A stretch of 64,000 bases of DNA from Blastocystis sp. Blastoise (lineage: Eukaryota > Protista > Bigyra: Opalinata): positions 1,054,001 to 1,118,000 of the forward strand of contig JBBPEB010000004.1 in NCBI GenBank assembly GCA_039096225.1, written 5' to 3'. The position numbers and the translations under genes are program-made. Within the stretch, counting starts at the first letter, position 1; each line of letters starts with the position of its first letter. The notes under the pieces are model-generated. The model was not told where the DNA came from, did not search any database, and saw only the letters and a program-made list of their open reading frames with translations. Shown piece by piece: positions 5,900 through 30,893 of this stretch.

Positions 5900-8300
5900 A
5901 GAATACGTATAATCAAGAAATAAGCGTAATTCAGTTCTATTTTGTTCGCAATTATATCGTTCTTTTAATTTTTATCAACCATCTCTTTTACTTTAGTAAG
6001 CTACTTATATTTAGCATTATGATTCAGACGCCTATTAAATTTTTGTATCATTCTAAAATCTTTGATTAGCACATATGTTTAAACCACTCCTCTTTCGTTT
6101 TTCATGTTTTTATTTATTTCCTATATAACATATATAGTATAAAGATTTGTTATATATTACTTCTAAAGCTTTTAAACTATTTTAAATATACATACGTTAT
6201 ATAAATAATTTCAAAAGACTTCCACATTTTGCGTGTTTTTTCTGTGTTTTACATTCTAGTTTTCTTTTACGTTATATCTTTACATGAAGCATTTCTATTC
6301 AACAAACGGCTACATAATGATACTTTAGAAGTAAGAGACGCGATCAGATCAACAGCCAACCACGATTTAACTAACTTCTCAGTCACTTCAGCACTATAAT
6401 TCAGAAAGAAAGTCTATTAAAAATACTATATACCCAGCGATATGTAAGAAACCCGGACTTATGCATATAATGGATCAAAAATAGCAGCATCTGAGATACA
6501 TTAGCACGTTAAAAATAGAAACCTGGACTTCAATAAGCTTTTCATTTCGTCTTAAACGCTAGTATAACTCATAAAAGTTTTATAATTAAATATAGATATG
6601 TATATACTATCAGATCCAACAAAGGAAACCTTAGGTAGAGCAAAAACATGGAAAAACACGGCTAATTTGTTTTCCAAAAAGTGTTTCCACAAGGTTATTT
6701 TCAACTATAATATTTAAAATATATTAAGGGGAATGTATAGAGTAAAAAGCAATAAGAATAAAACATGATCATGACAAATAGAGTCACATTGACGCGATTA
6801 CTTAATTAACACTTTGTTCTATTACAAAATAAATAATAAATTCATGTGTCCGACTTATAGACAAGATGATATACTATTTTAATATACATTATTCCTTTGA
6901 TTAGATCAAGAAATAAAAGAAATATGTTGAAAAATTCATATGAACAAAGAATTTCCCTTATTTCCACCATTCGTTTAAAAACCAATTAAATCGTCAATTC
7001 TTTGACAAATAAATAAATGTCATGATGAAATATGATATCAACCAATGATGTTTGACAATTAAAAGACATCTGGAAGCTTCTATGAAATCCCCGGCCTTTT
7101 TTTCGCGGGGCTAATGTTCCACCTCAACTTTTTGTAATTTTACAATATACGTAGTTTCATCAAAAAATAGTCATACCAATCAACTGAACATAATAAACTA
7201 AACCATTTGAGTGAAAACAACGACAACATCACACATCATTCAAAGACAAACATCATTATAAAGCCAGTTTAAAATACTTTTAAAAGTATGTAAGGACATC
7301 CAGGAATGTTTTGAGATACATTTCAAACCTAAAGAAAAAGAAAAAATAAATTCGCAGGTCTATTATACACTGTTATTCTGGTTTCATTTTTTTAAAGTAT
7401 ATGATTGGCTAGTTTCAGTTCAGAATTTGTTCAGCCACTAAAAACAGAGTAGTTTTAGAGACTTAGGTAAAAATCGTGAATTTTGACAAAATTTTGATAC
7501 TTTTTTTCAGTTGACTTTTTATTAGACTATAAAATTCATGTTTAGCATATGTTATCAAAGAATTGACAATATTTTCTTGTTTTACAAGGTCACATAATAT
7601 CCAAAACGTTTTTATTTTGTTTTAAGTCGCAATTACGACAAATAATGGGGTCAATATCTTAAAACCTTTTGTTGCTCTGTTTAAAGTTTAGACCTTCTTA
7701 GAGTCACAAGTATGCGTAAAAAGGAATAAAAAAGACCTCTATGGGTCAAAACCAAAATTCAGCCAAAAAGTCAAAAATTTATATTTTTTTTACACTGAAA
7801 AATTTAACCGAGCCTATTTGTATCATGGGCAGTTAGACCAGAGTTTTGAATTTTTAAAATATCTACGGGAATATTTTTCTTGTTCAAAACTGAGTCTATT
7901 TATATTTTAATATATATCAGAGGACACAAGTGTTTTAGAAACGTTTTTTCTTTAGATTTTATTATCACTAACATTTCCTCATCAAAAAAACTTATCAGAG
8001 GTTATAAAAAAACTAGTTTTTCACAGAATCAAAGAAAGTCCTTCTATTTGTTGTATTTTGAAATGATTCTGTAATAAACAGGTATTTTAAGTTAGAAACA
8101 GTAGTTTTAAAACGTTTAAAAAAACAGATCAGAGAGTCAAAGAAAATGAGTAGTTTGTTTATAAGTTATGATTAGTGGGATTCAAGAGTATTTAATAATA
8201 GTGTAGTATGTGACTTGTCACAGGTTATAATACTATTAAAATATCTAAAAAAAACAAAAAAACAATAAAACTGAATTTCTATGTAATTTTTCTTTTTTGA
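5900..8300. repeat. Diverged relative of the long-repeat family at 14492 and 25238 (boundaries approximate)
   Basis: Non-coding and lacks (TA)n tracts. TTTTGTTTTAAGTCGCAATTAC (~7615) matches TTTTGTTTAAAGTCACAATTAC (~26710) at 20/22. Also shares GTTTTAGAG, AAAACGTTT and TTTATTAGACTA words. Confidence 0.45.
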
Positions 8301-8799
8301 CTAATAAATTTGAATTTAAACGTGAATTCGCATTTATTTTTTATTTGACGTCTGTATTTGGAATTAGAGCTTATTAAAAGGTTTATGTATGTTTCTATGA
8401 TAAGGACATGCTATTTCAGTATTTAATTATAAAATATTTTATATATTTTTTCGTAATTCTTTAAGATTTTGCATTCTGGATTCCCTCTTTCTACCTGGTA
8501 GTCTTTGTATTCTTTTTTAAGATGGTTTGTGATGTACACATGTTGACTTATTTCTTATGAGGTATTTTTTTAGATTCATTTTTAATTCATTTAGGTTTTT
8601 GGTTACTCTTGTCTACCTTCTTTCAAACAACAACTCAAGCACTGTTGAAGGTATATAAATATATTATATATATTTTTATTTTTTTGCATTAGTACTTTTC
8701 AATTTTTCTCTTTTCGTATATAAATATTATTTTTATTATTGTTTATTCTTATTCATTTTATGCTTCTTATTTTATATATTATTTAGAGTATTAATTTTT

Positions 8800-9700
8800 T
8801 TGTCTCAATTTATGAATCCAGTTGATCGTTATATTCTTTTAAAGAAAAATATAGGTTTATATATTATTATTATTATTTATAACAATAATTATTATTATCT
8901 CTAGCCATTAAATGAATGTATAAAAAATGTATAAGAATCAGTGAATCATAATTATATAAGAAGAGGTTAGAAGAAGCTATGAAAAAGATTGAAGTGAACA
9001 TACAACATAATGATTTAAAGAGTAAAGAAAGGGAATTAACTCAACAATTGAATTGTAATTATCCTACGATTATTTAACTATATAATAGTTATAATGTTCT
9101 TTCTATTATTATATCTGATACTGTATATTATTATTCTATTATATATTTACTATATTATATTGAATTCTGTATTCTATTTTATGTAATGATTTTGTTTTAT
9201 TATTCTATATTATCAACTTATAAGTAGCCATTTATTATTGATTCATATTTGTTTTCTTTATAATAATAATAAAAGAATAAGAATGACTATATATATATAG
9301 GCACCTTTTTATTATTGGTACCTTATGTTTGTGCTATTATGAACATTATTACTGCAAATAATCATGAATATGCTAAGAAGCAATGTGTTCTTGAAAGAAA
9401 AATTGTAAAAGAATCATTAGTGAATGAAACATTATTTATTTGTATAAAAGTTCATCATCCTCTTAAATATGTATATATATATATATATAATTATTATTAT
9501 TATAGAGAAGAACTTGATTATTTATATTTTTATTTTATTTTATTCTTATTATTATGTTATATATATATATATTTTTTTTATTTATTTATTTATTATTTTA
9601 TATAAAGATAGAGAACAGATAATTCTTTATAATGTCAAAATTTCTATTTTAGAGATTAAAAAAAGGTATATAAATATTTATTACCTAATTATTCATATAA
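8800..9700 (+). pseudogene. Possible decayed gene fragments
   Basis: Purine-rich exon-like blocks bounded by TATAG/GTATA signals but broken by stops; no recognisable domain. Confidence 0.25.
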
Positions 9701-12258
9701 TAGTTTGTTTGATAATTATTTAATGTTGAAAATTTTAGCATTTATATACTATGAGATATATTTTATAGTATTTCTTCTTGTACTTCTTGATTAGAAAATA
9801 TCATATAAAACTAGAATTACTAATCAGAATATATATTTTTGTATGTTTATGTCACTACATTTTATGTAGACTATTTGAAAGCTAAATTAATTTCTTTGAA
9901 GCTTCTAATTGTAATATAATTCTTTTCAACGAACTTATTGGATAAATATATATTACATATTAAGATTTGAATTAATGTATTACCATGTTCATTGTTATAT
10001 ATATTTTGGTTACTTTTATTCCTGTATTACTACTACCTCTTTTTCCATTAGACAAATCTATATTTGGAATTAATTTATCTTCTTCTGACATTTTTTTTGT
10101 CTCCTATATTCTATTCATATATCTATCTTCATATTCTTATATTCTTTTTAAATAAATAAAAGAATTGAATTACTATAAAATTCAATTATACTCTTCCTTT
10201 GTTTAGAATTATCAATATATATTTTGAATTTTTTCTTCATCTACTCATAATCCTTTAATTTTTATATACTCATTTAAGTGCTTCTATAAATATATATACT
10301 GATTCTATTTAGTAAGAGTAGCCTTTCTACATTGATAACTCAATTCTACCTTCTAAACTATTTACTTGTTACTATACATTTATCTTTCTGAAAAAAGAAA
10401 TATTATTTCTAAGAATTTAAAATCAGCATTTATGTCTCTTATTCTTTTTCTATTTATACGTTAGAAAACACATATTTTCATTTCAGTCTTTATATAAATA
10501 TTTATTCATAATTAATATTTGATTTACAGAATTAGTCTATTATAATGTAAATATATTTTTGCTACTATTTTTATTTTCTTAAATATCTCAATAATATTCA
10601 AGATGTCTATCCTAGATTCAAAATATATCCATTTTATTGTTATAATACTTCTTATGCTATTAGTCTTTCCGTTATTATAATGAATCCTACTGAACATTAT
10701 CATAAAGATCTACATATACTTATTTATATTTTATATATAATGAAATAGATATTATCGAACTTATTAATAATTCTATTATACTAATTTTTATGTAAAAAAA
10801 ATACTAGGCTCATATTATTCATTTATTAATAGGAGTGCTTTAAAGCTACTTATCTTCCAAATATTGAGTTATATAATAATAATATTGCTATTAATGATAT
10901 TTATTCAAAAATTACTTTTGCTCTATTCCTGTATTTAGAATTAAATGTTATGAACTAAAATTTCATTATAATACTCTTACTATTCCTATTATATTAATTA
11001 TGAAATAGAAATGATAATAGCTATAATGCAAATATTATATATATATACTATCTTTATTCCTCCTGTGACTACTACTCATATTCCTGATACTATTATACTT
11101 TTATCAAATTATGTTACATACAAATAATGGCTCAAAACTGAGTATTTTCTTGTTTTAATAGTACTACTGATATTCATACTCCTTCTATATTATAGAATGT
11201 TACAATTACTCATATTAATGTATACTTATTATGTCTATGTTCATATTTTTTTAATGATATTGGTCATGATCACTCCAGGATATTATAAACATTTCATATT
11301 ATTATTATTTTCCATTATTATTACTTTATGTCATTATTATAACCATATAAGTATCCTAGTTTTTATTCTACTGTTGTGGTGAATCTTGATTACATGAATC
11401 TTCATATTTCTATTATCTAACTATTGTTTATCCCCTGAGAGTATTGAATCAACTAATAACGATTCACAAAAAAATAATGATATCAAAATTCTATTAATTT
11501 TATTAATTATCATATTATTATGTTCATCAATATAATTTCTTCCTTACCTAAACTTTTTATTATTTATATTTCCCTTACATCTGAGTCAATGTAACATATA
11601 TTCGAATTACAAATGTTACTACAAAATGGAGTATTCCATATTATTTAAAAGTTAATATATATATAGATTATTAAAAACACATCCTTATATTTTTAATTAA
11701 TGTAACCTAACAAAATTATACATATTTCTTCTTATTCATGTAATTATACATTTTCTACCAATAATACTACTAGTAATAATGATAGTGATCCTCATTTTAT
11801 TCATATTATTACTACATGTTTCCATTAATTACTATAATTATACTGTTTATAGTTTTCTTAATATTCTTACTATCATGTAATTATTTATACTTTAATTTGT
11901 ACATCACCATATATTGATTTCATTGATTAATGAAATTATCATATAATTTTAATACTATATGTAAATAATGATTCTATTTTTATAAATTCGAGAAACACTT
12001 ATATTATATTACATATGTATCACCTAATAATTATATTAATAATTATATTATGTTGTATTAAAATGATAAATCTCATGCTATTAATATATTGTTAAGCAAC
12101 TTAATTCCATTTTACTACAATTTATTCTCATTCGATTACTTTTATTTCCAAATGCTAATTATTATCTTCTTAAGTAATTCCTTTTTCTGCTTAAAACTCC
12201 TTATAATAAGTCTCTTTTATTATCTTCTTCTATTCTTATTGTTAAATAAGACTTTGAT

Positions 12259-12296
<38 letters not shown>

Positions 12297-14383
12297 CTCT
12301 TGTTGATCATGATATTATTAAGTTTTATTGATTACTTTTTTTTCGGAAAGTAGTTAACTTATAAGAAATATTCTATTTTGAATTTGATAAATGTAAGAAT
12401 TTTTAATAAGAATTATTTAATTATTTTTAATTGAATATAAAATTGAAAACTAAATATGTTCAAGGAGAATATAAAGCATTCTTCGGCACAATCATTTATA
12501 AAAGAAGACAATTCCTTTATGTTTGAAGTTTTATATAATCTCTTTCATGGAATCATTATTAAAAAGTTTCTTTGTTTTCTAATTAGTTTTCATATCTTTA
12601 AATATCTATATATATATATATTTATAATGATTCTATTAATTACTATATGTGAGGATTATTTCATACATTTAACTATGATTATAATTTATTTCTTTTTGAA
12701 TATATAAATCAAAAATGGCATATGTTCTATTTCTTTCTATTTTTATTCTTAATTTCAAATGAATTATATTATAAGAAAACAGTCATTAATCTTATCAATA
12801 AAATTAATCATTTTTTTATATATAGAAAATGTTAAACTATATCATTATCTGATTGAAATGAATAGATAATAATAATAATAATAATTGTTGTTAAAGATAC
12901 TGTTTAAAACGATATGATTCTCACACATTGAATATGGAAATTAGAAATTATATTTTGTAATAACAAATAGTATATAGAAGATATCATTTTCAACTTACTT
13001 AATATTTTTCATTTTGAACACATTACTTTATTTTAATTATAATAAAATTGTTTCATAATTCGAAATATATATCATATATTATTAGTATTTATCAGAATAT
13101 ATTATGTAATCTCTTCTCGAATTCTATTATATAAAGATCTATTTTTGATACTGTTATCAATTTAGCGAAGTGAAAATAATTATTTAACCTATCATACTAT
13201 TTCTTAGTATTATTTATCATAACTGGTATTACTAGGTGCACTTTATTCTGAATATAAATTAATTTATTTGAAAGAAAATACTTTGCATTATTGAAACACT
13301 TCTTGATTATTTATAACTAATATATTTCTTTTCTTTTATTTGACCTTGAATTTAAATCTCAATCTTCTATTTATAATTGAATTATCAAGTTTCTAATTAT
13401 GTAGTTAGTAATCAGAAATGGATATTCTTTCTATTTAGTTCTTCTTCTTTTTAGTGGTTTTATATAACATTAATTTTTGTTTTAATTATTTAAATTTCTT
13501 TTTAGTATTCAATAAAGAATCAGAATTCTTATGTCATATTATTAAATTGACTAATGATACTTATACTTAATACAGATATTTCGTATTATTATTTGGTTTA
13601 TCATATCATCAGCCATTAATGTTCTACTTCATAGGAAATTTCTTTATTATTTAATACTATTCTGATTTATTTTTCTTTTGTAAAGAATAACGTTAATTAT
13701 TTATGATTAAAATTAATAGAATTTAATTATACTATACTTCCTATTATACTACTGTGACTCTTTATTTTTACAGTTATGATTACTTATAAAAACAATTTGA
13801 TCATTAATTATACATTCTCCATATTTATTATGTTCTGTTATGATCTTATTTATAGATAAAAAAAAGAAATGTATATCTTTTTCCTATTATTAGTTATATA
13901 TATTATGCTTTTATTTTAATTCAATTTTTCGTTGAAATCTTATTCGAATCAATATGAATTATTTCTTTTAAGCCTTAAAGATAAAGATTTTTTGCAAATA
14001 TCTTTAAATAAAAATATCTATAGTATATATTATTAAAATGAGAAATATCAATGTTTATCTATACATAAATCTTCATTGATTCATATTACTATGATTATTG
14101 CATGTTATTGAATAGTTTGATATTATTACTATCAAACTAATTAGAATAGTTGAATTAAATAAAATGGATACCAATTATCTAATTAAAAATAATATATTAT
14201 GAAGAATATTGTATTTTAAAGTGTCTTAAAATGTCATTTATATATAACTTTAACTTCATACATATTTTAAAATATAATTAAAAGATTATTATGAATATTA
14301 TCTCCTAATGATAAACCATGATCTTTGTATCAAATCTTTTAGGATGTTATTTATATAAACAATATGGAAATATATGAAAGATG

Positions 14384-14491
14384 ATAATATATATAAAAAA
14401 TAAATAAGATAAATAAAAATATATGTATACCGTTATATCTTAATATACTAAATAATATATATAAAAAATAAATAAGATAAATAAATATATA
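14384..14491. repeat. 68-bp-period tandem duplication; its second unit is interrupted by long-repeat copy 1
   Basis: ATAATATATATAAAAAATAAATAAGATAAATAAA occurs at 14384 and 14452. The intervening ATATATGTATACCGTTATATCTTAATATACTAAATA reappears with 3 changes at ~18954-18989. Confidence 0.8.
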
Positions 14492-17400
14492 CAAGCGTTT
14501 CACGACTGGCTACGCCAGCCTACGCTTGAGTTTTGATAGTTGTCATCTCTTAATTGTTATATTTTATGTTGGTTTTTTTTTAAATATTATGTTTATTTTT
14601 ATGTTTTTGTTATTCATTTCTATTTTTTTATTTTTAGGATGAAGACTATTTCATATTTTATAAATTATTATTTCAATTGTTTTAGTTGTTATCTTCTATT
14701 GTTTAGTTATTAGTTTAGTATATTCTAAATAATTCAATTCATACTTTATTGATAATTCCTATTTAACATTTTATATTACATTTTTTTGAGTATTATTTCC
14801 TTTTTTATTTAGTATCATTTTAGCTATTTTTATTATTGATTATATATATTTATTGTTTATTAATAATAATTGATTAGCTCTTGTGTTTTATTTTTGATCT
14901 TATTCATATTTCTATTTCTATTTCTATTTCTATTTCTATTTCTATTTCTATTTCTATTTCTATTTCTATTTAGATTTCTATTTCTATTTAGATTTCTATT
15001 TCTATTTAGATTTCTATTTAGATTTCTATTTCTATTTCTATTTCTATTTCTATTTCTATTTCTATTTCTATTTCTATTTCTATTTCTATTTCTATTTCTA
15101 TTTCTATTTCTATTTCTATTTCTATTTCTATTTCTATTTCTATTTCTATTTCTATTTCTATTTCTATTTCTATTTCTATTTCTATTTCTATTTCTATTTC
15201 TATTTCTATTTCTATTTCTATTTCTATTTCTATTTCTATTTCTATTTCTATTTTTATTTTTATTTCTATTTCTATTTCTATTTCTATTTCTATTTCTATT
15301 TCTATTTCTATTTAGATTTCTATTTCTATTTCTATTTCTATTTCTATTTCTATTTCTATTTCTATTTAGATTTCTATTTAGATTTCTATTTCTATTTCTA
15401 TTTCTATTTCTATTTAGATTTCTATTTAGATTTAAATTTATATTTTAGTTTTCTATATTAATTCACTTTTCTTTGTTAATTTATTTATAACTGTTTTTGT
15501 AATTATAAATTCATTTAGTTTTATAAATATTTTATACTTTAAACAATATTATTATGATTATAAAATATTTTTTCTTTTAAAACTTATTATTATCAGTTAT
15601 TTCTTATCTTTAAGAATTTATTTTTTATTTTTAATTATTCTATATAATTATTATTATGAGAAAGAACTTACTCTTTTGTCTAAAAAATATTATTTATTCT
15701 TTTATAAATTTTCTCATATATTATTTTATTCCATTTTAAATTATTATCATTTTTATCTCTATTTGATTTTTTATATTCTATCATTTCTTTTTATATATAC
15801 TATTATATATATATATTTAATATTTTATTATACCCCTTTTCTTATTAATAAATGTTTAATTATATGTAATAGTTACTATATTTTAATACTATCAGATTCA
15901 AATGTTTATAATATTATTATTTTTTATTACTCCTATTTCAATTTGGATTTAAAAAAATATATATATATTTTTAATAATTAAAATATATATATTATTCTAT
16001 ATAATCGATAATAACTCATAGAGTTCTTTCTAAATATTTATCATATATAGAATTTCTTTTATAAAAGAAAAAAAGAATTATTTTTAAAAATTATCTATTC
16101 ATTTTTTATAATGTTTTCAAAATCATTTCATTAAATGAAACGAAAAACTAAATATAAACCAAAAATTACATTCTATATCATAAATAGATTTAGTACTTTA
16201 AAAACTGTAACTATCATACATAAAATATAGTTTATAAAACAAATGAGTTATTTTAAAAAAACTCTAAAAGACTTTAACGTTTTGAAATACACATATCCAC
16301 TTTTATTTTAACTAATTTTATGCTAATATACATATATATTTAATTTATTATTTTAATTTATAAAAAGTAACTTGAATTTCATTTGTTTAAAGTCACAATT
16401 ACAAAAAAAAATGAGTTCTTTTGAAAGATAAAAAACATTCTTTAAGCTATAATATTTTTGTATTTAGTGACAAAAAAACGTATTATACTGTTTTAGAAAC
16501 AATTAAAATCTTTTTACCCATTCTAACATTCCTATCAAACAGTCAACTACATTTAATTAAACTAATTTTTAATATTTTATATTCTATAATAAGTCTATTT
16601 ATTATTTTTATAAAAAGTGACTTGAATCTCTTGACTTAACTATTGTAATTCTAAAGAATCAAATTTTTAAACAACTTAAAATGTTTATTTATTGTAGATT
16701 TTAATATAAAATACTCCAAAAACACTCAATACTTTCTTATTCTAACCATTTTTTTAAAATAGACTCATTTTAACATTTTGGTCAAACACACAACCACCTT
16801 TATTTCAAACAATTCTTTTATTATTATAAACATTAAACACTCTAATACTCATTTTTACAAAAAGTGACTTGAATCTCTTCACTTAAGACAGTCAAACAGA
16901 CAATTCAAAATTATTTTACCCTTTAAACTCATTATAAAGTGATAATATTTATAGAATTGTCCTAATATATGGTTTAGGACATATTGAACTACTTTTTATA
17001 AAATTATGAGCCAACATGTTGCATATATATATTCACTCGTCAACTCCACTTTTGACCATTTTTTTGAGATATGCAATACATATAATGTCTAGTTTTCAAA
17101 TATGTAAAAATTAATTGTCAAATATGAATTTGATTTGTCAACTTTCAGAAAATTTTTAGAAAAACGATTTTTCAATTTTCAGTTTTTTAACATGTTATAC
17201 TATTGACTCTACTGAACTCATTTTTTTATTAATTTCAAATATTAAAAATAATATAATTAATATATCTTATTCTATGTATTTATTTGTTAAAATTATATAA
17301 AATAATAAAATATTGACTGAGAAATTAATGTTATAAAGTATACCCTTTTTTCAAAAAATAATTTTTTTATGTTTTTCATATATAATTTTTTATCTCAAAA

Positions 17401-18947
17401 GTTATTATATATTTTGATAAGATTTTTATCAATATATAAACTATAGGTTGTCTAGTTTATATATAAGTTTTATTTATTTTTTAAAAATTAATATTGATGG
17501 AGAAATTGTCAAAATAAACTATAGTATCAAAAATGTTTTCTTTTTTTAAACGATTTATTTCACTAATTAAAGACAATTAAAAACTTATTTATTTATTTTA
17601 AGCTTATTTATGACATATACAACTCATAAAGACTCATAACTAACTTTTTAAAACAAACATTGTCTGTATCAGTTCAACATGTTGTCTTAACTTTTTCAAA
17701 TAAGTGATATATAGTATCCATGAGTGGTTCTAAACACATATTAAAACGTTTTAAGAGTTTATTGAGTTAACATTGTCTGGTGATCTGTTGTTAAAGTCTT
17801 TTAAAAACAAAATAAAATTGTAAAATATGTTTATTTTGGTATGTAGTTTTTAAATATAAAGTAAAATGTCAAATAAAATTGTTAATGATGAAAATATAAA
17901 CAAAAAACAAATGAAAACTTTTTAAGAAAATTTTTTGAAAGTCATTTTTTATTGAGTTCAACTATTGACTCTTGTCACCTGAGTTTTCAATTAATTAAAA
18001 AAATGAAAAATATGTATCTGCTATGACATGTCTAGTTTCTAAATATGTTTTAACTTTTTTATTTTATTAAGAATTGATTGAGAAATCACAATAACAAACT
18101 ATACCCTTTTTTGAAAATTTTCATTTTTATGTTTTTCATATAAATGAATGTTTCTCAGTCAATATTCAATATTTAGATAAAATAAAAAATATGTATCTGC
18201 AATAGCTTATCTTAATTATAATTATACTTTTATTTTTAAAAAATACCCAAAACTCAAGGAGAAAGACGAATAACAAACTATACTATCAAAACATCAAAAT
18301 TTCTATTATCAAATATTTTCTTATGAAAACTTTTTAAACAACTAAAAGACATATTTCTGACATGTATTGATTCAAAATCACTTGAATAAACTCAAATAAG
18401 TTTATAAAGAAGGAATGTGTTGGATATCAGTTTGTCTTTTGTTGTTATTTAAAGGAATTATTGTTGTTTCAGAGTAGTTGAGGTCAGTATCATTGCATAT
18501 AAAATGGTTTTAGAGTTTATAGTTAGTGATGTGTGTATTGATATGTTGTCAACTTCTAAATATAAACAAATTTACCCGTCAAAACTATTTATTAGACTAA
18601 CCCGTCAATAAAAGTCAATTTTATAAAAATAAATATAAAGAATGTGAGTAGATATAGAAAAAATAAGAAAACAATAAAAAATAAAAAACGAAAAATAAGT
18701 GTTTTTATAAAAATGAAAAATATTGGATAAAATAGAAATAATCCAATAATTTTGGTTAAAATTTTGTGCGAAAATGGTTTTTTGCGTTTTTTAGCCAGAA
18801 ATTTAGAGTTTTCGAAAAATTTCTTTAACAGTCATTTTCAGAATTGTGTTCCGGTTTTTATGATGTTATTTTTATTTTATAAAAGTTAATAACAAAGTCA
18901 ATAAATGTGAAAGTGTGTGAGACACCGTACGCTACATGAACTAAATT
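14492..18947. mobile_element. Long non-coding repeat, copy 1 (4456 bp); probable non-autonomous mobile element with Helentron/HINE-like architecture
   Basis: Collinear with 25238..29272 from CAAGCGTTTCACG to ACATGAACTAAATT. Terminal hairpin, internal microsatellite and subrepeats. Flanked by ATAAATATATA on both sides (14481-14491, 18948-18958). Confidence 0.75.
14907..15432. repeat. (TTTCTA)n hexamer microsatellite with TTTAGA variant units
   Basis: Directly visible; it explains the FLFLFL ORF at 14870..15448. Confidence 0.97.
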
Positions 18948-19104
18948 ATAAATATATATGTATACCATTGTATCTTAATATATTAAATACTAATGAAAGA
19001 AGATAAGAATTAATAAGAATTAAATGAAATCCATCATTTTTAATATAAATTAATAAATAAAATTAAATAAATAAAATAATAATTATATATAGGAAAATGT
19101 ATTT

Positions 19105-22100
19105 TTAAGACCATAAAGATTTTAAGTATCGTGTAGTAAAAACAGTATTAGTTTGAATATCGCTTGAATTGTATGCTCTTCTATTTGAATTTTTAGAATG
19201 TATATCTTCCTATAATAATTTAATATAGAAAAATATATATAATTATTATATACTTGATTATATTCTTCATCCTCATCTTCACCCTTCTTTTTTATATGTA
19301 TATCTGAAATAATAATATTATCAGGAATAATCTTATTGATTATTAAGAATGGAGATCCATATTTAGATTCTATTGGAACAGAATCATTTGAATTATTTAT
19401 TATATAATATAATCTGCTAACTGATGGTTGTGAAACAGGGTATTCATGTTTTCTTATAAATACTATATCATTTATTTGAATATAATATAATGACTTTATT
19501 AGATGAATTGTATTCACATTTGATATATCTGTTACATTATATGCAATATAGGAGTTATCTATTGACTCTATTCCTTCGTCTTCCTCTGTACTTGTAAACA
19601 CTAATGATTCATTGATAAGAATTTCGGAATAATAAAAAATGGATAATAATTTCAAGTTTTCTTTTAGTTTATTATAAGATGAATTATGATCTAGTAAATC
19701 TATATTATTTGTGAGCAAATCCATATTAATATCTTTAAATAATAGTTGATTTATGGTAGTATCATTAAGTAAAATCAATTCTTTTATAAGATAATATATT
19801 TCTTGTTCATTAAGATCTTTCTCCTCTGACTCTCTTAAACCCTTTACAGAATGAATAAAGTTATTCTCAGCATATCTAATTGTTTTAAATTGTTTATGGG
19901 ATTGATATTCATTATCATGAATGATATTAGTTTCAACATTATTCTCTAAATCAGCTAACATAGGTGAAGAAATATTTCCATTATTTATATTAGAAAAATC
20001 ATTAATAAAACAAGCTTCTTCTTGTATAAGTTTTTTTATACTTGATTCATTAAAACATCTTCTTCCAAATGTTATCCGTTTTATTTTGGAGTAAAAACGT
20101 TCTGATTCATATGTACAGCCATATGAATATGACCCTACTGATTGTATAGAATCTGCTAAATGAAGAAGTAGATGTATTTGTGAATTGATAATCTCTCGAG
20201 GCAATAAAACTTCACATAAGAAATTAAAAAGATAACATTGTTTTCGTAGTATTTCTATATTGTTATTAAACATAAATAATTTATCATATTCAACTTCTCT
20301 AATTATTGTAGCTAAAGGATCGATAAGGAGAATAATTGAAGAATCTTCTATATTGAAATCATGAGTAATAAGAGGTAATATAACTGAAAAGAAGAATATT
20401 CTTGTATGCGAAGAAACACATGATATTTTCTTTTTATTCATGATTAATCTAAACTCATATTCATATTTGTTATATAAAGTATTAAGATTGATTATTCTTG
20501 TATTCAAAATATTCATGTTTTCTTTAGACAAACAATATTTATTAACTACTTCAACTCCTTCAGTATTACTATCTTTTGAAACTAGTGAAGAGTAATGCTC
20601 AGAGTTAAAACCAAATAATAAGGATAGAAATAGAGTTACAATATTATTAAACAGGTGCATTGTATCAATGCTGAAACTAGCTGAAATATCAAATAAGGGA
20701 ATACTTTCAAATGGGCAACATTTCTTTTTGACACCCATATATGATTCGTTCTCTTCACATAGACTTCTTTGAGTTCTTATAGTATCCATTGTCCTTTGAT
20801 TATATTGCTTCATTTCAAACGCATCATTATATATATATTCCAGTGGTATTGATTTAATTATTCTTGGTAGAAGACAAGATGTATCTTCTATATAATATGT
20901 ATATATAGTAACATTTACTATTATATAAAAATGTATAAAAATGAAAAAAAAATAGATATAAATATAGAAGAAACTAATACTAGAAATATATATAAAAATG
21001 TTTTTATTATGGATCATGAATATTAATGAAATATGAATATAAATAATTATAATATCAATAATGGTATACTATACTAACTATTTACAATATAGAGGCGATA
21101 TAAAAAAAAATTATATGAATAGTAATAACTATAAGATATTGAACTACATATGATATTAATACAGATACTAAGGATAATAGTAGTACTAATAACAATATCA
21201 GTATAAAGAAGAATAAAGAATGATATATATACTATTATGGATAATCAATGGAATATTGAAATAATGATAAAAATAATATAATATAAACATAATAATATAT
21301 GTTTATAAAAAGTATACTAATATAATTAGAATATATATATATATATATATACCTGGATTCTTGATAATTATTGGAAATCTTATTTCATTAATTTGATTAT
21401 TATCATTACTTTTGTCAATAAGATTAGATACACTTCCAAATGAGCATTTAATTCCTTCATGAAAATGTTCGTCTGTTCTTCCTATTTCTAATTCGCAACA
21501 TCTACATGGGAAAATAGAAGATGGTCCACTGAAACAACCGATTGCCGTCATAGCGGCATAGTCTCCATATACATTTAATAATATGCCAACAACCTTTCTT
21601 TTTTGTATAGTGTTGTTTATCATTATATCCATTTCTATCCCCTTTGAAAGTTGTTTAAACTCTTCAACTATTATTGACATTATAGGCCAACTATGATACT
21701 CTGAAGTAATTGCATAAGTCCAAAAAGATCTCTTATCATAATTTCTTTTAATATTATAGTTTAATAGCTTTATTAATAGAGGAAAGGAGGATCTATTATA
21801 ATCTGAAGAAGAATGCGAAAATACTGATATCCCATCACAAGTAAAACTAAAGGCTAAGAGAATATCGCCATTTTCTAGTAATCTTTCAATATACTTCTTA
21901 TATGTAATACTTCTTAAAAAAAGAGGAATATCATCTGGAATACTATTTTGATCTGAATTAATTATTGATAATATATCTTCTTTTTTATAAAAAGAAATAT
22001 CTTGGATCATTGTTTTTGATTTTAGCATTTGTCTTATCCTTGGTATTATAGGTACAATTGTTATTCTTCTACCTAAATAAACAATAATGCATATCTTATA

Positions 22101-22569
22101 TATTAAAAATATAATATTATTGTCATACTTGATTTCACCTCACAAATACTATTTGAACAAGTCCTTTTTTCTATCTCTATTGATTCTTTACCTTTATTAT
22201 ATCCAAGAATAGTATTACAACAATCTGATACATATATGTTAAGAGTAGAAACTTTATTAGGTACTAATCTTATTAATTTTTGTACTACCTGTTGACCATA
22301 AAGAGGAATATCAAATTTATTTATTGATGGATTTATTATTTCAATTATATCATTTACAAATTTATATATATTCTTAATTTTTTCCATACTAATTCTTAAT
22401 GAAATCCAAAATTCAAATATAATCTTCTCTATCTTCTCATTTACTCCATTAGAACCATGATTCTCATTTGATATCTATATATATGTATCTATATATATGT
22501 ATCTATATATATATATCTATATATATATATATGTATCTATATATATATATCTATATATATATATATGTA

Positions 22570-22618
<49 letters not shown>

Positions 22619-22848
22619 TATAATAAAAATACGTTATCTTTCAAAATCATATTAATGATTTTTGAGATTAAAGGATCATTTCCAGTTATATTAGATCCTT
22701 CATTTGAAACTATAGGTTCTATTACATCATCGTGTGATATGTCCACTGAATTATCATTGACTTCTATATTTCTTTCTTCATGATGTTTTGTTTCTTTATT
22801 TTTTCTTTTATTCGGGAAGCCATTATTTGAATATAATCGGTGTGTCAT
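19105..22848 (-). CDS. CMC superfamily (CACTA/EnSpm-Mirage-Chapaev)-like DDE transposase, about 1006 aa, 5 exons
   Basis: Exons 22848-22633, 22474-22129, 22072-21353, 20887-19254 and 19209-19105 join through phase-compatible GT-AG introns (3021 nt, no stops). Motifs: FTCDG (first D), GDYAA (second D), FPCRCC, IDTMH (DxxH), HLLLHL, YESERF (E). Start codon and last exon are less certain. Confidence 0.85.
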
Positions 22849-24243
22849 TCTATATATATCTTGTAAAATACAGATTGGAATAGGTGTATTTATTCTTAAT
22901 AATATTATTGAAAGTGAATAGAAATAATTAATATGATATATGATTTTGTACATAATCAATTTTACAACAGAAAAATTATTTTATTAGATACCTTTGTAAT
23001 TTCAAATAGCACCTGGAAATACAATAAATTCTTCACTTTATGTTGTTATTTCAATATAATATGAAATTACTTCAAGTTTTAAATGAAAACATCAGATTCA
23101 TGGAAAATGTATATATTCTTGTAAAAAAATATGGATAACCATGAATAGAAAAATAATTGAAGATTCTTTCTATTTTGTAAATACTATTTAATATTATGGT
23201 TTGCTATTTAAAAATAGAGATCACATCTATTTATGTATAATATATTTGAAATATGTTGCAATTGGAGACAAAATTGGAGTGCCCAGTTGAATTCAATTTT
23301 ATTAAAATTATGTGAATGCCAATCTTAATAAAGTCAACTGTATTATTGTCAATTATTACTTTTATTAACATGTTAATTAATACATATTTAGGTATTTCAT
23401 ATAGTTATGCATTTTTGATAGAAATATTTTAATATTTTGAATGATTTAAATAGAATTACTTTATTGCTTTTAATAGGAAGAATAAGTACAAATGATTATG
23501 ATTTGTTTATTTACTTAATCGATTATTAATAATTGCTAAAGTGAAGATATTATTTCTTTGTTTATCTATATAAACTATATGAGATATTAAAGTACTCTTT
23601 TCTATATAAGTAGTTTCTTCTATAAGAATAATCCTGACCTATTTTCTATATAATCGGCACTCTTCTTTTCTTTATATATTCTCCTATCATTTCATTTATT
23701 CGAAATACTTTTAGAAATAGATAGAAACTTCTAATTAATGGTTTTAGATTATATTAACTAGTCTTATTTATATTTAGCAGATACAATAATTATTCTAAGA
23801 GTGTATATATATATACATATATAATGAATATATTATATAAATTATTTATTATATATATAGATTAACAATACTTGATGCAAACTTTATATTATATTTTAAA
23901 TATTCTTTTGTTTTACTAAATTGATCAATATATTTACATTATAATCTTCTTAAATATATATATATATAATATAAGATATTCTAGTTCATTCTGGTTTTTG
24001 TTTTTAGTTGATTGTTAGCTAAAGAAAAACAGATTTCTTAAAAATTGTATCAATCACTAAATTTGATATATAAATACGTTTTCTTAACATAACTAACTGA
24101 TAACATTTTTATGATTAAAATTATTGTATTTGATTTTTTTATTTATATGTAAACACAAAGAAATATTTTTTACTTTTTATAGAATTTACAGAGAATAAAT
24201 AAAAGAAAACCATAAAATCATATATTTTTTATTTCATTTAAAA

Positions 24244-25152
24244 ATGCCTAGAAAGTATTATAAATATTATTTTGTTATAATAAATAGAAAAATTGAGGTT
24301 GAATTGTTATCTACAGATGAAATCATTAGAATAAAAAAATTCAAAGTAGAATTTCTGAATCAATTTCGTGAATTCTATTTGTCACTTCTTAATACAACAC
24401 AAAGTAGTATATATATATATTTTTCATAATTAATAATAATTATAGAACAATATAAGAAACTGGACTATGATATGGAAATTTTTTTTCGACGAGAGGCTCT
24501 AAAAAAAGGTATTAAAGTAACATCAATTATGTCATCAACAAAGGTCGTAAAAGTAATTATAATAATTTATACCATTATGATACACTTTTAATATTATAGT
24601 CACGTTTAAGGTTTATTCCATACGTTTTAAATAATGAAGAATTAATACAAGCAAGAATTATCTTTAAGAAAGAAAATGACTGTTTAGTAGTCGATGAAGA
24701 AAGTCAATTGTTCATATTAATTTTTCAAATAATTAAAGAATATCTATCAGTATTTAGTGAAACCAGTAAATTAAATGATTATACAATTAAAAGAATAATA
24801 AAAAAGGCATTTTATGATAAGAAAAATAATGGTAATTTTGTTTCATTTTTTGGATTTTTCTTAGAAGATAAAGATCATCAAATAATAGAAGATATATCAA
24901 AGATTAAAGAATCATTCATGGTAAATATTATATATATATCTATTTTATTATCTATATATATATATATTATTAATATAAATACATATATATTATATGATTC
25001 CCCGTGAAATTTACTTATATTTATAGATTTCTAATTGGATAAGGAATGACGAAGCCTTTAATAATAAGTCATATAAGTATAAAACCAACCACGTCATAAT
25101 ATCTCAACTGACGAGCTGTTATGACAGAGTCAAAAATAATATCCGTCACTAA
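24244..25152 (+). CDS. Spliced hypothetical protein, about 227 aa, divergent from the transposase; possible DUF4806/BEN-like accessory protein
   Basis: Exons 24244-24254, 24288-24406, 24446-24552, 24600-24920 and 25027-25152 join in frame via GT-AG introns (684 nt). The first 33-nt intron is in frame and optional. The domain guess rests on IKRIIKKAF...SFFG...LTSCYDR. Confidence 0.65.
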
Positions 25153-25237
25153 TTGTAAGTAATATGATTTGACAATAAAGGTTGTATTTAAAGACATACC
25201 TTTTTATTTATTCTAGAATATATTTTATTTATTCTTA

Positions 25238-28200
25238 CAAGCGTTTCACGACTGGCTACGCCAGCCTACGCTTGAGTTTAGATAATTATTATCTCTCAAT
25301 TGTTATATATTACATTGAATTTTAAAAAATGAATATTTATTCTTATGTTTTTGTTATTCATTTCTGTTTTTATTTTTTTTTTTTAGGATTAAAACTATTT
25401 CATATTTTATAAATTATTATTTCAATTGCTTTTAATTGCTATCTTCTAATGCTTAATTTTCAATTTAGTGTTTTATAAATAATTTAATTCATACATATTG
25501 ATAATTCTTACTTAGCATTCTATATGTTTTTGAGTATTATTTCCTTTTTTATTTAATATTCTTTTTAGCCATTTTTATTATTGATTATATATATTTATTG
25601 TTTATCAATGATAATTAATTAACTCTTGTGTTTTATTTTTGATCTTATTTCTATTTCTATTTCTATTTCTATTTCTATTTCTATTTCTATTTCTATTTCT
25701 ATTTCTATTTCTATTTCTATTTCTATTTCTATTTCTATTTCTATTTCTATTTAGTTTTTAGTTTTCAATATTAATTCACTTTTCTTTGTTATTTCATTTA
25801 TAACTTTCTATGTATTTTATCAATTCATTTAGTTTTATAAATATTTAGTATTTTAAATAATATCAATATGATTATAAAATACTTTTTCTTTTAAAACATA
25901 TTATTATCACTTATACCCTACCTTTAATTATTTATGTTTTATTTGAATTAGTCTATATAATTATTATTGTGAGAAATAGCTTATTCTCTTGTCTAAAAAA
26001 AACATTATATATTCTTTTCATATATTGTTTTGTTTTATTTTTAAAATATTATAATTTTGATATCTATTTGTTTTTTTATATTTTATCCTTTCCTTTTATA
26101 TATACTATTATATAAATATTTTAGAAATTTTATTATACAGCTTTTCTCAATTAATAAATGTTTAATTATATAAATAGTAATCATATCTTGATATTATTTG
26201 ATAAATATTATAATTTTTCTTTTATTATACTTATTTTAGTTTGAATTATTAATACAAAAGTACTCTTAATAATTAAAAGATATTTATTACTTTATATACT
26301 AAACAAAAAAATTAGAGTCTTATTTTAATATTTATCATTAATAGAATCTATTCGTTTTAAGTAAAAGAGAATATTTATAGAGAAATTATCTTTTCATTAT
26401 TTAAAATTAATTAATTCAAATTTAATTCAATTTTTATAGTGTTATCAAAATCATTCTAGAAATAAAAAATAAAAACTAAAATATAAAACAAAAATTACAT
26501 TCTATATCAGAAATAGATTTAATACTTAAAATACTTTACCTATTGTACATGAAATATAGTTTATACAACAAATGAGTTATTTTTAAAAAACTCTAAAAGA
26601 CTGTAACGTTTTTAAATACATATACTCACTTTTATTTTAACTAATTTTATATTCATATACATATATATTTGATTTATTATTTTAATTTGTAAAAAATAAC
26701 TTGAATCTCTTTTGTTTAAAGTCACAATTACAAAAAATGAGTTCTTTTGAAAGACAAAAAAAATTCTTTAAACAATAATAATTTTGTATTTAGTGACATA
26801 AAAACGTATTATACGGTTTTAGAAACAATTCAAATCATTTTACCCATTCTAACATTCCTATCAAACAGTCAACCATACTTAATTAAATCAATTTTTAATA
26901 TTTTATATTCTATTATGACTCTATTTATTATTTTAATAAAATGTGACTTGAATCTCTTGACTTAACTATTGTAATTCTAAAAAAATAATTTTTTGAACAA
27001 CTTAAAATATTTATTTATTGAAGATTTTAATATAAAACAATTTAAAAACACTCTATACATACTTATTACAACCATTTTAAAAAATAGACTCATTTTAACA
27101 TTTTGGTCAAACACACAACCACCTTTATTTCAAACAATTCTTTTATTATTATAAACATTAAACACTCTAATACTCATTTTTATAAAAAGTATATTGAATC
27201 TCCTCACTTAAGACAGTCAAACAGACAATTCAAAATCATTTTACCCTTTAAATTCATTATAAAGTGATAATATTTTCAGAATTGTCCTAATATGTGGTTT
27301 AGGACACATTAAACTACTTTTTATAAAATTATGAGTCAACATGTGCATATACTCATACACTCGTCTAACTTATTTTTGATCATTTTTTTGAGAAATGCAA
27401 TACATATAAGGTGTAGTTTTCAAATATATAAAAATTAATTGTCAAATATGAATTTGATTTGTCAACTTTCAGAAAATTTTGAGAAAAATGATTTTTCAAT
27501 TTTCAGTTTTTTAACATGTTATACTATTGACTCTACTGAACTCATTTCTTAATTAATTTTAAATGTTAAAATTTATATCGTTAATATATTTTATTCTATG
27601 TATTTATTTGTTAAAATTATATAAAATAATAAAATATTGACTGAGAAATTAAAATGATAAACTATACCCTTTTTTGAAAAATAATAATTTTTATGTTTTT
27701 CATATATAATTTTTTTTCTCAAAAGTTATTTTATATTTTGATAATATTTTTATAAATATATAAACTATAGGTAATCTAGTTTATAAATAAGTTTTATTTA
27801 TTTTTTAAAAATTAATATTGATGGAAAAATTATAAAAATAAACTCTAGTATCAAAAATGCTTTCTTCTTTTTAAACGATTTATTTCACTAATTAAAGACA
27901 ATTAAAAATTTATTTATTTATTTAAAGCTTATTTATGACATATACAACTCATAAAGACTCATAACTAACTTTTTAAAACAAACATTGTCTGTATCAGTTC
28001 AACATCTTGTCTTAACTTTTTCAAATAAGTCACGTACAGTGTCTATGAGTGGTTCTAAACACATATTAAAACGTTTTAAGAGTTTATTGAGTTAACATTG
28101 TCTGGTGATCTGTTGTCAAAGTCTTTTAAAAACAAAATAAAATTGTAAAATATGTTTATTTTGATATGTAGTTTTTGAATATAGTGTCAAATGTCAAATA

Positions 28201-29272
28201 TGCTTGTTAATGATGAAAATATAAACAAAAAACAAATGAAAACTTTTTAAGAAAATTTTTTGAAAGTCATTTTTTATTGAGTTCAACTATTGACTCTTGT
28301 CACCTGAGTTTTCAATTAATTAAAAAAATGAAAAATATGTATCTGCTATGACATGTCTAGTTTCTAAATATGTTTTAACTTTTTTATTTTATTAAGAATT
28401 GATTGAGAAATCACAATAACAAACTATACCCTTTTTTGAAAATTTTCATTTTTATGTTTTTCATATAAATGAATGTTTCTCAGTCAATATTAAATATTTA
28501 GATAAAATAAAAAATATGTATCTGCAATAGCTTATCTTAATTATGACTATACTTTTATTTTTAAAAAATACCCAAAACTCAAGGAGAAAGACGAATAACA
28601 AACTATACTATCAAAACATCAAAATTTCTATTATCAAATATTTTCTTATTAAAACTTTTTAAACAACTAAAAGATATACTTATGACATGTATTGATTCTA
28701 AATAACTTGAATAAACTCAAATAAGTTTATAAAGAAGGAATGTGTTGGATATCAGTTTGTCTTTTGTCGTTATTTAAAGGAATTATTGTTGTTTTAGAGT
28801 AGTTGAGGTCAGTATCATTGCATATAAAATGGTTTTAGAGTTTATAGTTAGTGATCTGTGTATTGATATGTTGTCAACTTCTAAATATAAACAAATTTAC
28901 CCGTCAAAACTATTTATTAGATTAACCCGTCAATAAAAGTTAATTTTATAAAAATAAATATAAAGAATGTGAGTAGATATAGAAAAAATAAGAAAACAAT
29001 AAAAAATGAAAAACGAAAAATAAGTGTTTTTATAAAAATGAAAAATATTGGCTAAAATAGAAATAATCCAATAATTTTGGTTAAAATTTTGTGCGAAAAT
29101 GGTTTTTTGCGTTTTTTAGCCAGAAATTTAGAGTTTTCGAAAAATTTCTTTAACAGTCATTTTCAGAATTGTGTTCCGGTTTTTATGATGTTATTTTTAT
29201 TTTATAAAAGTTAATAACAAAGTCAATAAATGTGAAAGTGTGTGAGACACAGTACGCTACATGAACTAAATT
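25238..29272. mobile_element. Long non-coding repeat, copy 2 (4035 bp), same orientation as copy 1
   Basis: Same termini as copy 1; the length difference is almost entirely the shorter microsatellite. No flanking duplication seen. Confidence 0.75.
25646..25752. repeat. (TTTCTA)n microsatellite, short version in copy 2
   Basis: Directly visible at the position homologous to 14907..15432. Confidence 0.95.
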
Positions 29273-30893
29273 AAGGATATTAATTTTTTTTTATATTTAT
29301 TTTATGTTTATTCAGTATGAATTAATAACGTTATATATCTTTAGTAATTCTTGATCTTATATAGGACGATGACTGATGTAGCCGTTCTTGTGTCACATAT
29401 TTATCTCTGTATGTATGTTTTTAATTCCTTGTTTTTGATTATTTTATTTTATAGTTAAGACTCTATCATGGTTGATGTGATTATTATTTTTGCTAAACAT
29501 TATTATAATTGTAAATATATTTCTTATATTCTTTTTTATAATATAATTAATTACTATCATATATAGGTTATTCGTTTGTACTATTTTATTAAAAATTATA
29601 CTTACGCTTGTATATATTTATATATTTGTAATCTAATTTTCTTTTCTTTTATAGTTAATACTTAATTATGATTTAGACTTAAATATATCTGTTCCAACCA
29701 ACTATATTGGTAAATATTTGTATGTATATAATTAAAATTAATACTATTTTCACTAATTTATATATTATTTTATAGGATTGAGAAAGGATTAAATTACAAA
29801 ATATATTTTATAATTTAAATATTATTTTTATAATTAATTGCTATTTATTTTATAATTAATTATTATTTATTTATAGGCATAAAACTGTACTTCATGATCT
29901 ATATGATTAATTATAAACAAATATCTTTCATTAAATATATATTTACGATATTTTTATTATTTAAATTGTTATCATTATCTATTCTATTAATATTAAGAGT
30001 TTTGTTTTCTATTATATACAGAAGTTATAAATATGTTTAAAAACACTGATAATTATTAAAAAGATAATTACTTTTATTGAAACACTAAAATTATTTTCGA
30101 ATAAATAGAATGCTCTATATAAGAAATTTTGGACATTTTATTGGCTCCCATTATGAATATTCTTAATTTTATTGGATTATTATTTTGCTTACTTCAATAG
30201 AATGTTAGAAGTTTGCTTTATTTCCCAAGGGGATGACTATGATAATATCTTAAATAATCTGAAAAATAATTAGTTGGAATTTCTCATGTATCGCTTTTTT
30301 CCTCCCGTGAAAAAAGACTAATAGTGTTAACTTTCATTGCATACTAGAATCTTGATTTTAGTAATCTCTATAGATATTATAAGCCTATGAGAATATTATA
30401 AATGAATAAAGTGATTCATCTATACTTTTTCGTAATCGATTTGATCGCCAATATGAATTAAATGACTGTCCTAATCCATGTCTTGTTACATAAAATTGAT
30501 ATAGATATGTTATAATGATAATCAACGATAATTATTTTTAAACACGAAAACATAACACGAAAAGTCTCTTGTCAAAAGGAGGGAAATCGAAAATAAATAT
30601 GAATGAATCGTAAAAGTAATTATTTATATTTAAAATGGTTATATATATTAAATTAAGATGTAAATGAGTTGAATATTCTATCAAATATATTATTTTATCT
30701 TTAGAATGATGGAGATAGAAAAGAATATACTTTTTCAATGATAAAAAACAAAGATTTGATCAATCATGAATTGAATTGTATGTTATTCTTAATAATTCAT
30801 AAATTAATACAAAACTATTTATGAAAAAAACAAATATATATTAATATATCCATATATAATAAATCAATTAATTATATATAGATAGATATCGAT

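Follow-up and report, generated by a model that had tools for sequence, protein, structure and literature searches.

Are the long direct repeats that enclose a transposase cassette in Blastocystis sp. Blastoise the ends of a composite or LTR-like DNA element, as the initial annotation of this locus proposed, or did they reach their positions in another way? The window studied here, by which we mean the whole stretch of 64,000 nucleotides that was analysed, contains a 6.3 kb core with two divergent genes. The reported long repeats, closely bracketing this core in the same orientation, are real: comparing the window with itself by BLAST, 15333-18948 matches 25646-29273 with 90.4% identity over 3659 bp, and 14490-15071 matches 25236-25811 with 85%. 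On the whole, the interval 7368-30326 is very probably an ordinary two-gene CACTA (CMC/EnSpm-like) transposon into which two Helitron-like elements have inserted separately. A new LTR-like architecture of DNA transposons is absent here, and there are nested insertions only. The features are listed below.

7368-30326, plus strand: complete CACTA (CMC/EnSpm-like) transposon, 22,959 bp, or 14,445 bp once the two nested insertions are subtracted
7368-7386, plus strand: left terminal inverted repeat (TIR), CACTGTTATTCTGGTTTCA, of whose 19 positions 15 agree with the right end in reverse complement; start of all four copies
30308-30326, minus strand: right TIR, reverse complement CACTATTAGTCTTTTTTCA
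7383-8899, no strand assigned: left subterminal region of 1.5 kb, no ORF, 71-79% conserved at at least 40 genome loci
14492-18948, minus strand (the Helitron sense): copy A, Helitron-like non-coding element, 4457 bp, with a (TATTTC)~90 microsatellite
14492-14528: counterpart in copy A of the terminal hairpin of copy B
18949-25237: core between copies A and B, 6.3 kb
19108-22848, minus strand: Tnp2/Transposase_21-like DDE transposase gene, aligned to P0001 by tblastn in seven segments (about 7 exons)
24244-25152 (limits of the initial annotation), plus strand: divergent accessory gene, of which exon 24708-24920 was tested
25238-29283, minus strand: copy B, complete Helitron-like element, 4046 bp, with (TATTTC)18
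25238-25274, minus strand: nested GC-rich terminal hairpin of copy B, forming its 3' terminus when read in Helitron sense, ...GAAACGCTTG with a host T next to it

The two genes of the cassette

The transposase was studied through P0001, an annotated protein of 972 aa from a sister copy, which stands in for the full-length product, the exons of the window being used by reference. In a direct Pfam scan the transposase itself stays below the thresholds, with only sub-threshold DUF4218 matches (13-22 bits, the cut-off being 27) in all five of the five paralogues. A profile built from 8 paralogues reaches remote proteins with E-values from 1e-11 to 3e-7, and P0022 at 2e-54; among the remote matches scanned, 7 of 10 carry PF02992 above the Pfam cut-off, and the atlas neighbours of the transposase carry PF02992 or Plavaka. 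The gene is placed among the PF02992 Tnp2-type transposases by transitive homology only, and this profile link supports the CMC/CACTA assignment made earlier. Its stop lies about 157 bp from copy A, near that repeat as first described.

For the accessory gene, which was said to end about 85 bp from copy B, the plus-strand exon 24708-24920 is confirmed, while the outer limits stay as the initial annotation drew them. Matches to this exon, of 35-62% amino acid identity, occur at 20 other places, which correspond to about 18 further loci; a paralogous transposase in divergent orientation lies a few kb away in every case.

Limits, ends and arms of the transposon

Homology to the sister copies G000:C15:1019904-1034350, C29 and C23 begins and ends exactly at 7368 and 30326, and the flanks of the copies differ. 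Overall, three full copies and one truncated copy are present. All four begin with CACTGTTATTCT, the three complete ones end with ...AGACTAATAGTG, and their flanks are unrelated. The ends form imperfect CACTA TIRs, CACTGTTATTCT... and CACTATTAGTCT..., which start with CACT(A/G) as in CACTA elements. It was correctly stated before that no CACTA TIRs surround the core; the true ones are at 7368 and 30326, both outside the interval then considered. The flanking trinucleotides are TTA/TTA in C29, ATA/TTA in the window and AGC/AGT in C15, so a 3-bp target site duplication (TSD) is perfect in one of the three complete copies, the partial matches being weak in a genome of about 78% A+T.

The left arm of 7.1 kb contains no ORF longer than 96 aa. 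Subterminal repeat arrays are typical of CACTA elements, without being strictly defining; here 7368-8900 shows no repeat families, and 29285-30326 contains weak AT-rich pairs only. In addition, an Rfam search of 7000-31000 gives no match.

Empty sites and the origin of the direct repeats

The sister copies provide the empty-site comparison which the initial annotation had proposed, and both repeat sites are empty in them. In C15 the segments 7368-14491, 18948-25237 and 29285-30326 follow one another unbroken at 99.8-99.9% identity. Since the sister sequence runs uninterrupted across both repeat positions, these are empty sites: C15, C29 and C23 all lack the insertion at site A, and the one at site B is missing from C15 and, by BLAST continuity, likewise from C29. 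The C29 copy carries yet another insertion of the 4 kb element, a third and distinct one, which splits the accessory exon at core position 24781; neither the window nor C15 has an insertion there. The fourth pair of filled and empty sites is given by a copy of the element nested within another copy of the same element. In three of the four filled/empty pairs (sites B, C and D) the element has inserted precisely at TTA|T; site A is atypical.

The two repeats of the window also have different relatives. Seven copies elsewhere (L015-L021) share 99.4-99.8% identity with copy A, against 90.5% between copies A and B; the nearest relatives of B are 93-95% identical to it. Copy A is a recent insertion. 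A and B belong to different subfamilies and are independent insertions. Copy B inserted at TTCTTA|T without a TSD, with one extra T in the T-run. The junction of copy A is atypical in combining an end replacement of 10 nt with a flank duplication: at its right-hand end on the plus strand, a duplicate of the left flank, TAAATATATA, has taken the place of the final 10 nt (14482-14491 = 18949-18958). Separately, an 18-mer at 29604-29621 is an inverted copy of the left junction of copy A; it is native CACTA sequence, present in C15 and nearly so in C29, and is not a product of the insertion.

With these results the readings first offered for the locus can be weighed. If the long repeats worked as the ends of a new kind of DNA element, LTR-like or composite, carrying a CMC transposase, their identical orientation and their position near both gene stops would be expected. 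Yet the three other copies of the cassette lack the repeats and continue into the shared CACTA arms, A and B are not mutual closest relatives (90.5% between them against 99.8% from A to copies elsewhere), and no common TSD flanks 14492-29283. A census of the units points the same way: repeat-core-repeat occurs in none of the 3 other core copies, and at least 60 solo repeats have no transposase nearby. The reading is ruled out by the empty sites in the sister copies, and we give it practically no chance. Another proposal was a rolling-circle element that had captured the transposase, so that B, core and A would move as one large Helitron. Read in the Helitron sense (minus strand), the order is indeed B, core, A, and bypassing the terminator of B could transduce the core as far as the hairpin of A; adjacent and nested copies of the 4 kb element in the same orientation do exist in the genome. 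Against such read-through of a 3' terminus, the genome holds no second B-core-A copy, the core continues on both sides into CACTA arms shared with repeat-free copies, and A and B come from different subfamilies with separate empty sites, all of which leaves capture extremely improbable. What holds is the remaining proposal, two independent insertions that bracket the cassette, as the empty sites, the different subfamilies and the larger element with CACT TIRs all indicate. The transposon has ordinary TIRs of its own, and the repeat is abundant and has no general association with this transposase, the outcome which the initial annotation had named as refuting its reading.

Two insertions of the element of about 4.05 kb have very probably entered the window copy of the CACTA transposon after its split from the near-identical C15 sister, both landing in non-coding DNA slightly past the stops of the two divergent genes and in identical orientation. 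In this arrangement the cassette looks as if long direct repeats framed it.

The 4 kb Helitron-like element

From the placed copies compiled in the genome, the element is non-coding, about 4.05 kb long and present in at least 64 copies; the first look had given 83-85 candidates per end, and one terminal 27-mer occurs at 46 sites against 0 for the reversed control. The search for ORFs in the 4 kb repeats finds none longer than 72 aa. All 27 of 27 copies have an A before CAAGCG (background A 37%), and ...TTAA is followed by T in 22 of 22 (background T 40%). The element inserts between A and T without a TSD, as Helitrons do. As in Helitrons again, it has no TIRs (its ends are unrelated, and inverted repeats of at least 100 nt are absent) and it bears a hairpin near the 3' end. 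This hairpin, conserved in all copies, has a DNA folding energy of -12.9 kcal/mol, with z = -4.5 relative to shuffled sequences. Taken in Helitron sense, the element begins TTAATATCC and ends CGCTTG, in place of the canonical 5'-TC...CTRR-3'; the termini being non-canonical, we therefore name it Helitron-like and do not file it as a Helitron.

The genome has 51 PF14214 matches in long open frames, most of them of 1,476-1,677 aa. One resident autonomous Helitron (L038) has a canonical hairpin and a CTAG|T 3' end, and its 3' region, the single one compared, shows no similarity to the 4 kb element; for none of the 46 terminal-motif sites is the distance to a RepHel ORF a plausible one. The element behaves as a non-autonomous Helitron would, and it is presumably mobilised in trans, by the rolling-circle route, by one of the about 50 resident RepHel Helitrons. 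It might instead belong to another class free of TSDs and TIRs (e.g. a tyrosine-recombinase, Crypton-like element) or have spread by recombination, to which the non-canonical termini, the odd junction of copy A and the failure to find a partner with shared ends at the L038 3' end or the 46 sites would lend themselves. We regard this as unlikely, since insertion is precise at A|T in three of four filled/empty pairs, the flanks are invariably A and T, the terminal hairpin is present and intact RepHel genes abound in the genome.

Only 8 of the 64 copies lie within 12 kb of any Tnp2-like match, and 3 of these 8 are the insertions in the present CACTA family (sites A, B and the one in C29). For the approximately 50 kb of this family, the genome-wide density would predict roughly 0.15-0.25 insertions, compared with these 3. 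A bolder and very improbable reading is that the element is an atypical rolling-circle transposon with TT...CTTG ends which prefers CACTA elements, and that the A/B pair could be mobilised together as a chimeric Helitron. Such a chimera would carry a complete CACTA transposase cassette, and the replaced 10-nt end of copy A would then represent a second, non-canonical integration route.

Comparison with known systems

Explaining the direct repeats by nesting removes a false lead, and two transposon families are delimited and classified in a tortoise-derived Blastocystis, namely a CACTA element of 14.4 kb with two genes and a non-autonomous, Helitron-like element of high abundance. They are new members of kinds already known. 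Copies of 99.8-99.9% identity, intact ORFs and empty sites within one genome suggest that both have been mobile recently. The main text of the Blastocystis tortoise genome paper gives the bulk TE content only (5.6-7.5%), with Helitron and CACTA unmentioned (PMC12129017).

The transposon resembles the CACTA/En-Spm elements in its imperfect CACT(G/A) TIRs, its size of 14.4 kb, its two genes (Tnp2 and, in the known system, a TnpA-like second gene), its putative short flanking duplications, consistent with 3 bp, and a transposase that the profile connects with PF02992 and DUF4218. It differs in that subterminal repeat arrays are not detectable in the window element and its TSD is perfect in one of three copies, in that the left 1.5 kb subterminal region is conserved across many families, in the divergent arrangement of the two genes, and in its host, a stramenopile gut protist.

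The 4 kb element is similar to non-autonomous Helitrons of the Helitron1 type, with A/T insertion without TSD, no TIRs, a GC-rich 3' hairpin, no coding capacity, derivatives by internal deletion, copies that lie next to or inside one another, and a host genome with many RepHel genes. Unlike in those Helitrons, an autonomous partner with matching ends was not found here in the comparison with the L038 3' end and the 46 terminal-motif sites, the ends are TT(AATATCC)...CTTG instead of TC...CTRR, and the outer stem of the hairpin reaches the very last base.

Nested transposon insertions are common in the TE-rich regions of plant and fungal genomes. There, as in this window, one TE family inserts repeatedly into copies of another and gives rise to apparent long direct repeats, and the present case does not differ from them in any essential way.

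The repeat pair and its surroundings

Self-comparison of the window bears out the two same-orientation long repeats described in the initial annotation: 15333-18948 matches 25646-29273 with 90.4% identity over 3659 bp, and a second segment matches at 85% (14490-15071 and 25236-25811). Copies A and B differ in length because of a (TATTTC)n microsatellite, which has about 90 units in A but 18 in B. The distances between the core genes and the repeats had been given accurately (about 160 bp and 85 bp), and CACTA ends are indeed absent directly beside the core, the element ends being found at 7368 and 30326. The features are as follows.

7368-30326: CACTA element, including both repeats
14492-18948: copy A of the 4 kb element
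18949-25237: 6.3 kb core between the repeats, carrying an intron-containing transposase (minus strand) and, divergent from it on the plus strand, a small gene
19122-21017, 21303-22028 and 22103-22387, minus strand: open reading frame pieces of the transposase
24244-25152, plus strand: accessory gene, with the limits given by the initial annotation
25238-29283: copy B of the 4 kb element

Origin of the repeat pair

The arrangement arose from two nested insertions, independent of each other and in the same orientation, into a CACTA transposon. With the core as query, three further copies were obtained from the genome, which were taken with their flanks and aligned. On contig C15, window segments 7368-14491, 18948-25237 and 29285-30326 are contiguous with 99.8-99.9% identity, and the insertion points of copies A and B (sites A and B) are both unoccupied; site A is also empty on C29 and C23, and site B on C29. 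At a third site (C, core position 24781) one 4 kb element is present in the C29 copy, and this site is empty in the window and C15. As to the relationship of the repeats, the last 3.4 kb of copy A has 99.4-99.8% identity to seven copies elsewhere (L015-L021) and 90.5% to copy B, and the nearest relatives of copy B are at 93-95%. Copies A and B are not mutual closest relatives, therefore they are not repeats made or carried together. Independent insertion had been one option of the initial annotation, and the empty sites and the separate relatives decide for it. The LTR-like or composite reading fails, as ordinary TIRs bound the other transposase copies, these are not linked to the repeat, and the repeat is abundant; the initial annotation had itself named such findings as evidence against that reading.

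This CACTA family, amounting to about 50 kb, holds three insertions, against about 0.15-0.25 expected from the genome-wide density. The simple explanation is that gene-free, AT-rich transposon DNA serves as the target in a compact genome. The G+C content of the window is about 20-25%, and tortoise isolates have genomes of 26.0-33.3 Mb, of which transposable elements make up 5.6-7.5%, and a G+C content of 21-23% (PMC12129017). The main text of that genome paper mentions neither Helitron nor CACTA (PMC12129017).

The CACTA element and its genes

Homology among the four copies begins exactly at 7368 and stops at 30326, with unrelated outer flanks. The element ends are CACTGTTATTCTGGTTTCA and, as reverse complement, CACTATTAGTCTTTTTTCA, agreeing at 15 of 19 positions, and the element without the two insertions measures 14,445 bp. 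The flanking trinucleotides, TTA/TTA (C29), ATA/TTA (window) and AGC/AGT (C15), are compatible with a 3-bp TSD, without proving one. No subterminal repeat arrays were found in the element. The ORF-free left subterminal 1.5 kb (7383-8899) is conserved at 71-79% in at least 40 loci (855 first-look candidates), many more than the element has close copies; possible readings are a shared cis region and a non-autonomous derivative family.

Seven tblastn segments (19108-22848) match P0001, a 972-aa protein annotated on a sister copy. Pfam gives the transposase DUF4218 matches only, all sub-threshold. A profile of eight transposase paralogues of this genome, compared with 1.8 billion representatives, detects remote proteins, and 7 of the 10 scanned bear PF02992 above the Pfam cut-off, often with DUF4218. 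PF02992 is Transposase_21, the CACTA Tnp2 family; language-model neighbours of the transposase likewise carry PF02992 or Plavaka. Overall, the genome has more than 50 Tnp2-like transposase loci in several families, with 30-60% identity to the window transposase and many open frames, one family having nine copies with identical scores and shared internal stops. In addition, one intron of the transposase contains about 155 bp of palindromic (AT)n-rich sequence (22466-22621), with similar sequence at 46478-46642 and many genome sites.

The accessory exon (24708-24920) recurs, with 35-62% amino-acid identity, at 20 other places (about 18 further loci). In each case a transposase paralogue is found a few kb away, in divergent orientation, thus the exon belongs to a true second gene of the transposon group. 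On C29 (697365-701613, L033) a 4 kb insertion breaks this exon at about residue 25.

The 4 kb element and its insertion

Copy B finds at least 30 long matches in the 33.3 Mb assembly, with 87-95% identity, on many contigs and with common, sharp ends. One terminal 27-mer occurs 46 times versus none for the reversed control, and each end has 83-85 first-look candidates. Among 64 copies placed, eight are within 12 kb of any Tnp2-like match, three of which are the insertions in the window (A, B) and C29. The element has no ORF longer than 72 aa and no match in Rfam. Its plus strand starts with CAAGCGTTTCACGACTGGCTACGCCAGCCTACGCTTG, which forms a nested hairpin (-12.9 kcal/mol when folded as DNA, z = -4.5), and ends with ...ACTAAATTAAGGATATTAA.

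A fourth filled/empty pair (site D, L027) is a deletion derivative nested in another 4 kb copy. Insertion at sites C and D is exact, between A and T of TTA|T and without duplication, and site B shows the same except for one extra T within a T-run. Genome-wide, all 27 distinct copies examined for it have A as the preceding base, and T follows ...TTAA in 22 of 22. Nesting of 4 kb copies is seen at C8:1446320-1454768 and at L027 (C5:392929-398848), and deletion derivatives joining positions 1-48 to 1122-4047 recur at several loci. A dispersed repeat of about 0.5 kb (L038:5883-6394, C23:98882-99393; 86-95% identity, at least 15 loci) stops exactly at the start of the C23 CACTA copy and also adjoins 4 kb copies on C7 and C16.

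Copy A ends with the 10 nt TAAATATATA in place of the AGGATATTAA seen in 99.8%-identical relatives, and this is an exact duplicate of the 10 nt left of the insertion (14482-14491; 18939-18958). Since such duplication is found in copy A alone among the four filled/empty pairs, the integration was non-canonical; it looks like an end-truncated copy captured at a staggered break. The 18-mer ACGCTTGTATATATTTAT at 29604-29621 is a perfect inverted copy of the left junction of copy A. It is identical in C15 and has one mismatch in C29, showing native CACTA sequence, therefore it was not made by the insertion.

Comparison with Helitrons

With the minus strand as sense, the 4 kb element has four hallmarks of Helitrons, and it probably moves as they do: A|T insertion without TSD, the lack of TIRs, a terminal GC-rich hairpin, and internal-deletion derivatives retaining both ends. 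Helitron activity appears both high and recent in this Blastocystis genome, which has 51 Helitron_like_N (PF14214) matches within long open frames, mostly of 1,476-1,677 aa and of at least three size classes. One autonomous 3' end was read (L038, 1-3047), and it is canonical, with hairpin GCATCGGC-GAA-GCCGATGC, a spacer, and CTAG followed by T. Unlike the TC...CTRR of Helitrons, the 4 kb element ends are TTAATATCC...CGCTTG, and comparison with that 3' end, and of terminal-motif sites with the ORFs of RepHel (the Helitron-encoded protein), showed no common termini. Therefore we name the element Helitron-like in behaviour and a candidate Helitron member.
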